Origin: Glycera tridactyla
Taxonomy: Eukaryota
Length of the DNA stretch: 64,000 nucleotides
Direction: 5' to 3'
NCBI GenBank assembly: GCA_965644265.1
Contig: OZ286460.1
Location: forward strand, 52,948,001 to 53,012,000
A model generated the notes under the pieces. The model saw only the letters and a program-made list of their open reading frames with translations. It had not been told where the DNA came from and did no database searches. Shown piece by piece: positions 3,001 through 62,520 of this stretch. The position numbers and the translations under genes are program-made. Within the stretch, counting starts at the first letter, position 1; every line of letters starts with the position of its first letter.

Positions 3001-6000
3001 GCGTGTTTTGCCTGGAATTAATCGCAGCTATTGTGGTAGTCATCATGGTGTGCTCACTCAACTAGACGATTCTCCTCCTCAGCCATAACACTGTTTACCA
3101 ATCCCATTACCCAACCATTGTTGTTGACTAAAACTAGTCTCCTGAAATCATCAGCCTAGCCCCCTTGATCCTCTTAGGACGTCTCAGCGGTTTAATACTA
3201 AACATGTTGGTACACACTGCCAAGGGCGTGCTATCCCCGAGGTACATCCAGAGCTAACAGTAAAATTAGGGGGCAAGTCTAATTAAGAACTTGTGTCAAT
3301 ACCACTCGGCCACTTGCCTCCTCCCCAAAATAACACTCTGTAGTGGACTCAAGTGATTCCCCAGGTCATCCTGACTAATGCAAGCCATTAGACCATTTTC
3401 TATCGCACTATCTCTTAAGTTCTTAACTATAAATCAATATATCCCTTGTGTCAGCCTATGAAACATGCAGCAACCAGCAAGAAGCAATATGGAGAAAGGT
3501 CTCCATTGAATCTGTTGGCATGCCTTAGTAATATAAGTTGTATTAATTTATTTTATGCACGGCTATCCACCTGTGATAGTATCACTCATTAGTTTTTTGA
3601 TATGATTCATTTTTTGATATGATAACATTCATCACCACTCCCACAACTGATACTAAAGCTCTGGATGAATGATATTATCAGTACATTGCCTACACTGCAG
3701 TCTTTGTCACATATCTAATGCCTCCAGTGCAGTCTATATATTATTCGGAGAAAACATTCTGAACCTTTGTGGAATTCCCAACTATGCTATACATGTATCC
3801 CAACGCTATACATGTATACATCTCCGAACTGGAACCAACTCTCATTCAGTATCAAGAGTACATGCCTCCCTGGTGAATATCTTGCAGGATATGGCAGATA
3901 GGGCCTCAACAATCAAAAGATACTGGCCAGGGGGGAATGAGAAATTACAGTCCCAAAGGTCAAAATGATTCTCAAAAATCTACCTGGAGTCAGGCAGTGA
4001 CTTGTAAATGATATGGATTTTACCAAATGATGAGCTACTGGATGTTGTTGCCAATGAAACATGGCACCTTTCAAAACCTGACACCAGCACACTGCTTGAC
4101 CATATACTGAACAGATTTGATGTAAGAATCACAATCATATAGAATAACTGATGAAGGATATCCCCAAAGGCTGTAACATCGATATCTCGAGTGACCTGAG
4201 TCAGGAACAGGGGGGAACTCTTCTGGAGAGAGTGGCAGGAGGGGTTGACGTCCAGTACAAACACTGCAGCTTAAAGATTATAAAGGGCTAAACCAATGCA
4301 CTGCATACACAAGATTAACAAGAGACAAGGCATAGAAATATTCATTTCAAATTCATCTACATCCACATCCCAAAATCGTGCTTCAATGAAAAACCAGACA
4401 AAAAGTGAGTGTCAGGCAAAAATCAATAGAATTTAGCATCATGAAAAAAGTGCAAAACAAATCATCGTCACAAACCGAGACATCCCAGCACCATTCAATT
4501 TATTGATGAAATTTGAAATATCATTATGATAGATAAAATGATTCCCAAGTTAATTTTTTTCATTGTGAAATGAATATTTCTAAACACCTATCAGAATTAC
4601 CTATGGAAAAGGCACTTCTAGTAAGCATTTAGCATCTCATAGCAAACCCATGGTAGAGTCCTATGTTAGCAAGAAGGAACTCTGTTGGTGACTTTACTGC
4701 ACCATTGAATCATATTTTTCTAAGGGCAGACTTTCACATAATAAAGGCAAAAGTAAAATGTTGATAATCACAAAGTGAAATTGAAGCTCAAAAACCAATT
4801 ATCTTCAAATTTGGAGGTCACAATCACATCAACATGGAAGGATAGGAATTTCATTTAGTGAAGTCAACAAGAAGATAGAGAATCTATTTAGTGCAGTCAC
4901 CAAGAAAGTTCCTTGAGTTATGGTGCATCTGCTTCTTGAATCCAACTTCAGCATAGCCAGGGTGTGAATGGGACGATCAACTTGCAGGATTATTCATGCA
5001 TGTGGTAGGCATGCAAATCAAACTTGTCACAGGCACCAACACTGCTGTGCTCGCCAATGAAAACAATGATTCGACCATCCACTGGCATATCAATATATCA
5101 TATATGCACACCACATTATGAATGCAGAGCAAGTTTGTCGACATACACACCACCCTGACCATGTGCATTGTCTTCATGAATCAGCTGCAGCAAAAATTGG
5201 CATGATTTCCTTGTGGCGTTCACTGTTTGCTGAATACCGTCTTGTCCCTAATTACGCTGTATACATTGGATGCACAGAAGAAACACCCCTGCTTTAAGAA
5301 AAGAAATGATTTTATTATCACATGAAATATCCAATTTGATCTCTGCAGAAGTTAGTTCTAAAAGGCTAATAGAAAAAGAAAAAAACAAACAATTACAAAA
5401 CCCATTCAATCAAAAACTCCAATAAAGCTTCAATATGAATTGATATCGCAGCAACAATGAGAGATTGCCATGGGAAGTCACCCGGAGTGGTATTCATGAA
5501 GGAGAAAATAATATGATTAATGTACAAGAGGATGTTGTTCAACAGCCATCAGAACAGGTAATTCAAAGTGCTTTTTTGAGTTCATACCACCCCTGCATAT
5601 GTTCATAGGCATCTCCCCACAAGATTTGGGCAACCTATGAACATGGTCAGGATCAGATGCACCAAGTTTTGTATGCACTGTTGGCCACACAAGCCACGGT
5701 TGCTGGTACGAGCCGTGGCTTGAGGGAAAACCTGTGCAAGATACAAAACGTGGCTCATGACAATGAAAATGGAATGATGTTTAGACTGCTGGCCCAGACA
5801 TGTTGCTCACCTGTGCTGCTGGTTCCTGGACTCTCAGACAAAATCTGCATTGGCTTTCTATGCAAACCAAAGCATAGTTTGCCAAAGATTTGCCAAGAAC
5901 CATAGCACTTCGACCTTTCATGCTGATACTCAAAGTAATGCTTTTCATGCCTCCGCTATTATTTTCATATTTCAGCTATCAAAATGTTAATAACTCACTA

Positions 6001-8745: not shown

Positions 8746-10111
8746 ATAGATTGCTGCCAATCACTACAATATAATTGTATTTTTTTCTCCCTACATTCTG
8801 TATGCAACAAAAGATCGACGGGACATGGGTATAAAGCTGATGATTTCTGAGGAAGATTAGANNNNNNNNNNNNNNNNNNNNNNNNNNNNNNNNNNNNNNN
8901 NNNNNNNNNNNNNNNNNNNNNNNNNNNNNNNNNNNNNNNNNNNNNNNNNNNNNNNNNNNNNNNNNNNNNNNNNNNNNNNNNNNNNNNNNNNNNNNNNNNN
9001 NNNNNNNNNNNNNNNNNNNNNNNNNNNNGTGTGTGGTATATGTATGATGCATGACTCCTTCAAATATGGATCTCTTATATCAATATCATCAAATGCAACA
9101 CTACATTCATGACTAGAATATAAACCTGAATCTCGAAACTCACATACTATTTTTCGAATGGCAGTTCATGGAATAGAGATCAGTTGGGTAATGAGTGTGG
9201 TGATGGAAGAACACTGCTGACAAATACCTATGCTGTCATCATCAGGACATGGCGTAAGCGTGAAGTGGTTAACACAGGAAAAAACTGAGCAAATGCATGT
9301 GACTATTCTATTGACAAAACAGCTCATCCAACAGGTGCAATAAGTTGATTAAATGATCGCAATGATAAAAAATGGATGCAGTTGGGAGATGGTTAATGGG
9401 CATGTGTAGGCTGGGCTTTATAGGCAGGGCTTGAGTTTATAGTCTATAGCACTCTACACAGTGTCCAGCGACCTGAGGATCATGTTGGGGATTGCGACGA
9501 GGTCCGGGTGCCTATTTATTCTCAGCTCTAGATTGCATACGGCAGCAAGCAGAGAATCGCCTCTGTAGCAGAGCCAAACGGGCCGCTCCAATACGCTGCA
9601 ATGCATCAGTGGAAGCGTTTTCAGCTGTGTAATAAGAAATATGGAAATCCTAATGAAAACGGAGTCCCTAATAGGACCATCTGACATGGGCTCACAGAAT
9701 TCATTTGGCCACATGTGCTAACGGTGGCTGTGCCTGCCCAGGCAGCAACAACCACCGAACTTGCAGTATGCGAACTCGCTGTATGCCGATATTGCAGCTG
9801 GTCCCAAGACGCTGCGAGAAGGAACATCAAGTGAGTAGTCAGGATTCCCCGAAGAATTGCATGTCTGGTCACTTAATCTGAGGGCATTATGGGAGCTCTT
9901 CTGGGAGGATCTCTTGGGCTAGCTAGTCAGTCTCTCTCTAATAGTGACACTACAAACAAACTCAAGACTTCGGCTCACATCTGGCACATGCTGACCAATC
10001 AAACGCATCATGTCATACAGAAGAACAATCCCCACGAGAACACCGAATCAGGGAGTTTGACTCTCTCCAGTATTGACCAATGAGCCGGTTCTATGGATAT
10101 AAGTACCAGTA

Positions 10112-10261: not shown

Positions 10262-10831
10262 TCCTCAGCCAAAACGATGATCTTTCCATCTATCTATCCA
10301 TCATCAATCAATAATAGAAGATGCTGAGAATGAGGAGAGCTGGGGGGCCAACCAATCTATGATGCTACTGGAATTTCAAATTTTGCGACAAATTTCACAC
10401 AATTGGGTGATACCCTGCTCGATTTTCCAGTGTGGAAAGAGTGGTGAGCAAACAGAGAGGCGGCGAGTCAACACGTGTTTAGCACCCTAATCCCATAGAG
10501 ACTGCGTGCTGAATGGGCAGTCCCGAGGCAGTGTAATGGCCAAGTACAATGCCACAAATGGGATCAGTGGGCCTTGTTGAACTTACAATTTACTCCTCAA
10601 ACAGTCCGGGAAATGTAGCCAGTGAGGACTATTGACCACAATTTACCTGCCTCACCAATCTAACTGATGTAACAGTCAACCACTACTTAGGTCACAAGAT
10701 GTAATTTACAGATGCTCGTCTAAATAATTCATCACGGTGATTACCATTCCCTGCTCACTTCAATGACCCGAGTCTCCAATGGAAGAGATGGATTCCCTCA
10801 AGAACCACTCCTTGATTTGAAACAATATGTG

Positions 10832-27779: not shown

Positions 27780-61512
<33,733 letters not shown>

Positions 61513-61756
61513 TGGCGTCAGCCTAGGCGGCCTTCCAAGTCGTTCGAACCGGTGTCCGTCGGAGAATTACGTAAGTCCGCGGTCAAAGCAGATTTCCACC
61601 AACTAACAGTCCATCCAGTAAACAATCCCAGGTCCAGTGTTGCGAACCTACAAAAATGTCACAACTCGGTAAATCCACATGCATGCGAGCTGCCATCAAC
61701 ACGCGCGCCGAGTATAACTAGTAAACTGTCTGTGCTCGTGGCTTCACTGTGTAAAT

Positions 61757-61766
61757 CTGTCAATCA
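61757..61766 (-). promoter_or_regulatory. PBX-MEIS/PREP decamer TGATTGACAG
   Basis: Plus strand ctgtcaatca is an exact match to the established PBX-MEIS/PKNOX heterodimer site, about 245 nt upstream of the Meis ATG. Confidence 0.7.
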
Positions 61767-62279
61767 AATGCCGCTGCCGATCGACGTGCATAACGAATGG
61801 GCCGTCAAGCACCCGTCCCGGCCATGGGCAGCCCGTATGGGCGAGACATCTACAGTTTGGCCCAGCCCCGTATCTCATAGAACACACCACCTCAATGGAC
61901 AGGCCAAGATGGGATGGACCCGCCGTCACAAATGTATTCCAAATGATAATGACAGGCACTCCCGGCTACTTCAAAAACCACACATTTAGCAGCGGCATCC
62001 CCCAACTTTGTGCAATTTCTACCCTCAAAACTCAACGCTTTTCCCTCTCCTTTCCCGCAACTTCTACCCAATACGTGTGTTTTACTCGCCCAAACTTGGC
62101 GATTAATAATACTCGCCACGTTATATTTTCTCTTCCGAAGAGTGCGAATGACGTTTTAACGTCGGTGTATTGATACGTCCAAGTGTGCGCGCGGTGTATA
62201 TTTTGAATGATAAAAAAGAAAAACAAAGATGTACCTCTCCGGGGTCGACAGGGATGTCAGATAAGTTTTAGACGGCGTT

Positions 62280-62520
62280 AGAGTAACATGCAGGCCGAAA
62301 TTATCAATCCGTACGGCAGTAATGACAGCTGGATGGTTGAATTTGATTAAGCACTGATATTTAGCAGTGTTCGGTCATATTTACTAAGTCAGAACCTGAG
62401 TGCGGCGGCTACTGTCAGTGTGCGGTGCATCCACGTCTGATTTGTTTGATTATGCCAGTTGCTGGCAGTTGAAGCTCCGCCCCCACGTCGATGCTAGCCA
62501 CGCCCCCGTGTGGAGGCCAA
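62280..62520 (-). promoter_or_regulatory. Candidate proximal promoter of Meis
   Basis: CpG-rich, about 0.8-1 kb upstream of the ATG. GC box CCGCCCCC at 62477-62484, CACGCCCCC near 62499-62507, TGACAG/CTGTCA at 62323-62328 and 62412-62417, and a TGAT/TAAT core at 62301-62310. The TSS is not determinable. Confidence 0.55.

Follow-up and report, generated by a model that had tools for sequence, protein, structure and literature searches.

A module conserved between protostomes and chordates surrounds a PBX-MEIS/PREP site near the start of a Glycera tridactyla Meis gene

Results

The Meis gene and its first exon

The 64,000-nt stretch of Glycera tridactyla DNA analysed here (the window) contains, downstream of the decamer with which this study is concerned, a Meis gene on the minus strand. 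The coding part of its exon 1 is tiny and reads ATG GCG ACG CAG AGG, followed by GTGAGT (MATQR; ATG at 61510-61512, last exon base at 61498). Further Meis-domain exons lie near 46.8k, 34.5k and 28.0k of the window, and the homeodomain exons lie outside it. A small exon is expected between the exons encoding NEDI...NQ and MIQAIQ; a motif search of 34580-46686 did not find it, and it may reside inside one of the four masked N runs of that interval.

Transcript contigs from public runs were used to define the first exon. Contigs X1 (61498-61712) and X2 (61498-61700) are 100% identical to the window and run from 61498 into exon 2 sequence, which establishes that exon 1 is real and spliced. Their 5′ ends, at 61712 and 61700, are positioned 45-57 nt downstream of the decamer, and the decamer is not included in either contig. 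Two other contigs, X3 and X4, agree with the window over 61498-61648, and what follows in them is found nowhere in the window. Because these two leave the window sequence at 61648, we conclude that the acceptor TTTTTGTAG/G at about 61648 is joined to a first exon that lies farther away and, from this upstream first exon, that Meis has both a distal and a proximal promoter here. In transcripts that begin at the distant exon, the decamer is intronic. As the contigs cannot fix the transcription start, we place the decamer within about 60 nt of the start and leave the side unstated. The decamer itself may be transcribed, given that the RNA contigs stop so close downstream of it and that the corresponding mouse site seemingly lies about 50-60 nt past the annotated start (see Discussion).

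The gene model of the bivalve Solemya has the same layout of two first exons, the distal one being only about 1.1 kb upstream. Intron 1 varies widely in length among the loci described below, from 4.85 kb in the window (56651-61497) to about 155 nt in L001 (10330-10486) and about 70 nt in the scorpion locus L037 (10013-10084). The position of the tiny first exon, of four to five codons, is kept from the probable cnidarians to vertebrates.

The decamer and related sites in the window

The earlier note on this DNA had reported a perfect PBX-MEIS decamer on the minus strand, 245 nt from the start codon of Meis, and we observed exactly this: the minus strand reads TGATTGACAG, an exact PBX-MEIS/PREP composite site (DECA motif) in which the PBX half-site directly abuts the MEIS/PREP half-site to give the full 10 bp of the DECA motif, and its last base is 245 nt from the A of the ATG (254 nt when counted from the start of the decamer). 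The wider string described in the same note, AAGCCACGAG followed by GACAGTTT, is also present and turned out to be part of the conserved module presented below. The two TGACAG sites that were listed with it, at 62323 and 62412, do exist, but the hexamer occurs at chance level and we found no conservation of either copy. The window as a whole has 47 TGACAG hexamers where 47.5 are expected, and hence shows no enrichment.

Two copies of the decamer occur in the window when both strands are counted, against 0.30 expected from shuffles; at least two copies were present in 4 of 100 shuffles, and the count in the window alone is only mildly unusual. The second perfect copy of TGATTGACAG is located at 31537-31546 of the minus strand, where an intron separates the exons encoding MIQAIQ and HELCDNF; a TGTCA sequence is found 5 nt downstream of it. 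None of the other loci examined has a conserved counterpart of this intronic copy. We also considered a tandem or dispersed repeat as the source of both decamers, which a repeat search and a comparison of the flanks ruled out. Between 61450 and 62600, CCAAT or ATTGG is found in only two places, one at the Meis ATG and the other 560 nt upstream of it, and neither is near the decamer.

Table 1. Coordinates of the features in the window and of the decamer in the other loci. Distances are from the start of the decamer to the ATG.
Locus	Feature	Position	Strand	Distance to ATG (nt)	Basis or remark
Window	Meis exon 1, RNA-covered (5′ UTR + ATG)	61498-61712	-		Transcript contigs
Window	Meis exon 2, ...KRDKDQIYG, spliced to exon 1	56390-56650	-		Reading frame and transcript contigs
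Window	Whole conserved module, ~190 nt, close to transcription start	61614-61807	-		Alignments and BLAST
Window	Upstream TGAC-type site, TGACGG; 41 nt before decamer	61802-61807	-		Site-offset comparison
Window	Block CCATTCGTTAT (CCATTTGTTAT in other spiralians)	61790-61800	-		Alignments
Window	PBX-MEIS/PREP decamer TGATTGACAG, invariant core	61757-61766	-	254	Identical in every module-carrying locus; second, intronic copy at 31537
Window	Block AAGCCACGAG	61735-61744	-		Alignments
Window	Block GACAGTTTACTAGTTA, second GACAG site	61715-61730	-		Alignments
Window	Block GTGTTGATGG	61693-61702	-		Alignments and site offsets
Window	TGACAT site, then T-run and TAG; also used 3′ splice acceptor	61648-61661	-		Transcript contigs
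Window	Block GGGATTGTTTACTGGA in 5′ UTR, contains TTGTTTAC	61614-61629	-		Alignments
L001	Decamer	10067		247	
L003 (L003-L005)	Decamer	2894		247	
Solemya (L006)	Decamer	11132		238	
Amphioxus	Decamer	12443		234 (about 235)	To ATG of ATGGCGCAAAGG/GT; only copy in 67 kb
Catfish Meis1	Decamer	9655		346	Only copy in 75 kb
Sea star	Decamer	9126		875	Only copy in 67 kb
Probable corals (L015)	Decamer	3502		244	ATG at 3746

Position of the decamer in other Meis loci

Searches with exon 2 protein queries returned a single fragment when a word index was used, and 15 matches, mostly exon-2 frames on genomic contigs, when the search was exhaustive. The named proteins nearest to exon 2 of the window are nemertean and molluscan, with 50-58% identity, and a search with the nearest full-length relative, P0052, gave the nemertean Tubulanus (58%) as the nearest named source. 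The N-terminus MATQR groups the window gene with L001 and L003, both of which have MATPR. The loci compared were L001, an ENA contig of 395 kb, and L003-L005, host DNA in three metagenome assemblies, all treated as spiralian; L006, from the bivalve Solemya velum (protein KAL5008494.1); L007 and L008, from Branchiostoma; L009, Meis1 of the catfish Pangasianodon hypophthalmus, which is the only vertebrate gene in the comparison; L036, from the sea star Acanthaster planci; and L037, from the scorpion Centruroides sculpturatus. Probable coral contigs are described in a later section.

One could envision that a 10-mer happens to lie near a gene start by chance and has no function there. The presence in the window of a second decamer that is not conserved, and of TGACAG hexamers at chance level, would be compatible with this. 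However, a given 10-mer is expected in only about 0.002 copies per kb of upstream sequence per locus, both strands counted, and the decamer was found less than 1 kb from the ATG in eight independent lineages; the recurrence is therefore not a matter of chance. Its flanks and spacing are conserved as well, and we regard a functionless chance occurrence as effectively refuted by the cross-species alignments.

Sequence similarity beyond the decamer

Each 300-nt module was compared by BLAST with each whole locus. The best E values obtained with the module of the window were 1e-25 for L001, 1e-27 for L003, 1e-15 for Solemya and 4e-4 for amphioxus (63% over 169 nt). The amphioxus module, when used in the same way, matched the window (4e-4), L001 (1e-7), L003 (4e-10), Solemya (4e-4), catfish (4e-10; 76% over 75 nt), and the two groups of probable coral contigs, group C (5e-10) and group D (6e-7). 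With either of these two queries, the strongest match in every complete locus was to the module. The flank GAGTGGCAAAAAGCCA is, letter for letter, the same in amphioxus and catfish. No direct alignment beyond the decamer was obtained between the window and catfish; since both match amphioxus, the homology of these two is transitive, with amphioxus serving as the bridge.

The earlier note had pointed to a similar sequence upstream of vertebrate MEIS2 and had raised the possibility of a non-coding element conserved between vertebrates and invertebrates. Alignment with the regions upstream of other Meis ATGs bore out this expectation, in that a match at the equivalent position, comprising the decamer and flanking blocks, was found in amphioxus, catfish, Solemya, two spiralians and the probable corals; a conserved vertebrate-invertebrate element is thereby shown for Meis1 (catfish), via amphioxus. 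As judged from these alignments, the decamer is confirmed as the core of a module of about 190 nt that has been kept in place in molluscs, amphioxus and a fish, and probably in corals.

Two loci gave a different picture. Acanthaster keeps only the decamer and a TGACAA sequence 12 nt upstream of it, and its BLAST matches were not significant. The Centruroides paralogue has no decamer within 5 kb, even at one mismatch, and no similarity to the module; with this single locus (one scorpion paralogue) as the sample, the presence of the module in Ecdysozoa appears unsupported so far.

Order and spacing of the blocks

The aligned blocks follow the order TGAC-type site (−41), CCATTTGTTAT, TTGATTGACAGATTT, AAGCCACGAG, GACAGTTTACT.GTTA, GTGTTGAYGG, TGACA with T-run and TAG, and GGGATTGTTTACTGG, and TTGATTGACAGATTT is invariant in four spiralians. 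The comparison across loci showed that TGAC-type sites are all in the forward orientation, at −41, +4, +61 to +67, and +93 to +105. The most upstream of them is TGACAG in L003, Solemya and amphioxus, and its offset of −41 holds for amphioxus and for all four spiralians; none of these five has an indel in the 41 nt that precede the decamer. The position of the GTGTTGATGG block (+61 to +67) is occupied by TGACGG in L001, Solemya, amphioxus and the probable corals, and a TGAC site at +93 to +105 is present in seven loci.

Where the spiralians have the AAGCCACGAG block, amphioxus, catfish and the probable corals have a longer palindrome, GTGGC-N5-GCCAC, of which the block is the right half. This palindrome, whose right half can also read GCCAT, directly follows the decamer at 12455-12475 in L007, 9668-9688 in L009 and 3514-3532 in L015; its left half is missing from the spiralians, the window among them. 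Next to the decamer of amphioxus, catfish and group C, it presumably resembles an NFI site. We also take TTGTTTAC within GGGATTGTTTACTGGA to be a putative forkhead-type core, and TGACAGATTTAC looks to us like a MEIS-posterior-HOX composite.

An alternative to a role of the module in DNA binding is that it acts at the RNA level, either in the 5′ UTR or in the intron that precedes the acceptor at about 61648, by affecting first-exon choice, translation or stability, and that the match to a TALE site is incidental. In agreement with this, the part of the module at 61614-61647 belongs to the mature 5′ UTR, the block consisting of TGACAT, a T-run and TAG is a 3′ splice site that is actually used, and the mouse decamer possibly lies just inside the annotated 5′ UTR, as its primer positions suggest. 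However, we detected no conserved secondary structure (the consensus has −3.2 kcal/mol over 229 columns, with a covariation term of −0.14) and no Rfam match, and the RNA contigs that start nearest to the site are without the decamer. Furthermore, the 10 bp of the invariant core are precisely those of a known protein-binding site, for which occupancy in vivo has been shown in mouse. We consider it very unlikely that the conservation is explained by a role in RNA.

Probable cnidarian copies of the module

Metagenome contigs were scanned for the pattern of a decamer, a gap of 11-12 nt and RAMGCCAYGRG. Among the 26 matches were 17 near-identical contigs (group C), the contig L027 (group D), two from the species of L003 and five bacterial-like contigs. 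The five were set aside as chance matches, as they look like bacterial coding sequence. One metagenome contig, L017 (MDSQ01037855.1), has a version of the element that is very close to those of amphioxus and fish; it is chordate-like, possibly vertebrate and possibly human, and was kept out of the alignments.

The group C contigs and L027 carry a compact Meis gene. In L015 the start of the gene reads ATG GCA CAA CGG/GT (MAQR), and the flank of the decamer has GTGGC.AAAAGCCACGAGAC, GTTAC and TTGTTGACGG in common with amphioxus (E 5e-10). At six positions where 277 bilaterian Meis proteins show no variation, the Meis protein of groups C and D has a different residue, and the region after the homeodomain is one open frame, an arrangement that has been reported for non-bilaterians only (Irimia et al., PMC3140891). 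The six divergent residues, together with the single frame after the homeodomain, place these contigs outside Bilateria. The JGI sample series from which they come consists, we assume, of coral holobiont metagenomes, and it is quite likely that the contigs are cnidarian.

A second decamer, in inverted orientation, is located about 650 nt further upstream in these sequences (L015, 2844-2853; L027, 7550-7559; L030, 4428-4437). It sits in a block that is conserved between groups C and D, with AACACCTGCTGTTAATTGG adjoining, and may represent a further TALE-responsive element.

Discussion

Comparison with mouse and zebrafish Meis sites

The same 10-mer is found close to the start of a Meis gene in mouse, where it is occupied by MEIS1 and PBX1. 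The primers used for the mouse Meis1 promoter flank a consensus PBX-MEIS site, TGATTGACAG, and ChIP of this site recovers MEIS1, PBX1 and, after forskolin treatment, TORC2 (Goh et al. 2009, J Biol Chem, PMC2707216). CCCCTCAGA occurs both in the reverse primer of the mouse ChIP and in catfish, about 45 nt past the decamer, and the mouse site is therefore very probably orthologous. Judged by the primers of Yamada et al. 2013, it would lie about 50-60 nt after +1. Goh et al. treated the site as a mouse ChIP target only, with no word on conservation outside mammals, on the flanks or on the spacing, whereas the Glycera tridactyla element belongs to an invertebrate and was traced across phyla.

The 10-mer is also the DECA motif of PREP:PBX dimers, which in zebrafish blastulae lies mostly near the transcription starts of genes for developmental transcription factors, according to Ladam et al. 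(2018, eLife, PMC6023610). The ChIP-qPCR sites of that study are PREP-occupied and are named after the nearest gene, and the primer table includes a pair for meis1b. We mapped one of the two meis1b primers to catfish 9612-9631 with one mismatch, 24 nt upstream of the decamer; the other had no match in the catfish locus within three mismatches. The site in the window has the motif of the zebrafish DECA class and its location near the start of a developmental transcription factor gene, but lacks the nearby NF-Y CCAAT box that typifies this class.

A proposed docking platform for TALE dimers

One interpretation of these results, which we consider reasonably probable, is that the module is an ancient array of sites close to where transcription begins, on which PBX docks together with PREP or MEIS, and that it gives rise to auto- or cross-regulation of Meis. 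The module near the start of the ancestral tiny first exon (MAQR/MATQR) would then be a cis-regulatory platform on which dimers of TALE homeodomain proteins dock, with an array of TGAC sites in a single orientation, at −41, the decamer, about +64 and about +100, surrounding one full-strength composite site. Early on, the Meis promoter would be marked or poised by PBX and PREP, the latter being broadly expressed; PBX with MEIS would then hold Meis on, which would amount to positive auto- or cross-regulation. We infer that PBX, MEIS and PREP bind the module in Glycera tridactyla and take part in such a feedback loop. PREP:PBX is possibly the main occupant rather than MEIS, in which case the loop would be one of cross-regulation and not of autoregulation; an autoregulatory role is nonetheless plausible.

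Another scenario is that the decamer serves as a bookmark for PREP:PBX only: maternal or ubiquitous dimers would hold the decamer from early cleavage on and poise the promoter, MEIS would not be involved, and there would be no loop. In the zebrafish study, 75% of the blastula PREP peaks carry the 10-mer, mostly less than 5 kb from the starts of developmental transcription factor genes, and the meis1b pair appears in the ChIP-qPCR list, with one primer next to the orthologous fish site as described above (PMC6023610). On the other hand, MEIS1 itself was recovered by ChIP at the mouse Meis1 promoter site (PMC2707216), and chick Meis2 stimulates its own expression, as seen in the tectum (PMC3313853). 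The extra single sites TGACAG and TGACAA in the same orientation suit monomers of MEIS or PREP equally, and the absence of a CCAAT box near the decamer is not what would be expected of the zebrafish class. We therefore think that occupancy by PREP:PBX without participation of MEIS is unlikely, although less so than a role in RNA, and prefer the docking array with auto- or cross-regulation.

Relation to other deeply conserved elements

Two Bicores, located upstream of Id and Znf503, have been called the first regulatory sequences conserved between protostomes and deuterostomes (Clarke et al. 2012, PLoS Genet, PMC3410860). Like the Meis module, the Bicores are short blocks of transcription factor sites kept in order, orientation and spacing beside an orthologous gene in protostomes and deuterostomes, with an identity of 60-70%, at the edge of what BLAST detects, and with some species acting as bridges. 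The Meis module has the corresponding properties: its sequence is conserved between protostomes and deuterostomes, its sites keep their order, orientation and spacing, and its decamer is always upstream of the Meis first exon. Bicore2 contains Meis, Pbx and Hox sites, and neither Bicore is linked to a Meis gene itself. Unlike the Bicores, the Meis module is positioned at the promoter and in the 5′ UTR, a region that screens for conserved elements may, we assume, skip, and it probably reaches cnidarians; its regulatory role is a proposed one.

The Hoxb1 autoregulatory element (Popperl et al. 1995, as cited in PMC3581578) is likewise deeply conserved and composed of TALE/homeodomain composite sites, and it is a feedback element. 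It differs in that it has PBX-HOX sites, is a distal enhancer and is conserved vertebrate-wide, whereas the Meis module has a PBX-MEIS/PREP site at the promoter and appears to be far older. Our literature search, the coverage of which was incomplete, found no report of a Meis promoter site that is conserved outside vertebrates.

Non-coding sequences that align across the protostome-deuterostome divide are very rare, and the present module adds one more, at the promoter of a gene for a key Hox cofactor. The divergence between these two groups spans more than 550 million years, and the module is, on the alignments presented here, among the few non-coding sequences known to be of such age. Its core is a binding site for the protein family that Meis itself encodes, and it offers a short, mutable target with which to ask whether TALE feedback on Meis is an ancestral circuit of animals. 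The module also ties the mouse ChIP data, and possibly the zebrafish data, to invertebrate genomes, provides a natural test case of binding-site order and spacing frozen over deep time, and can help in practice to locate the ancestral Meis promoter when new genomes are sequenced.

The probable coral contigs raise the question of a still greater age. If corals, spiralians and chordates indeed share one order of blocks at about 240 nt from the MAQR start codon, the module could predate Bilateria, and a TALE feedback or cross-regulatory loop on Meis could already have been in place in the common ancestor of cnidarians and bilaterians. We offer this as a tentative proposal, toward which we are somewhat more doubtful than inclined; if it is correct, the module would be among the oldest conserved cis-regulatory sequences known.

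Alternative first exons accompany the MAQR-type exon in two of the deuterostome loci. In Acanthaster (L036) the MAQR exon, at 10001, is followed about 290 nt downstream by another coding first exon (MQLSL, at 10287), and in amphioxus an alternative first exon (MNQYLQ...) lies 2.7 kb upstream of the MAQR-type exon. These positions indicate that each lineage acquired its alternative Meis first exon at a site of its own.
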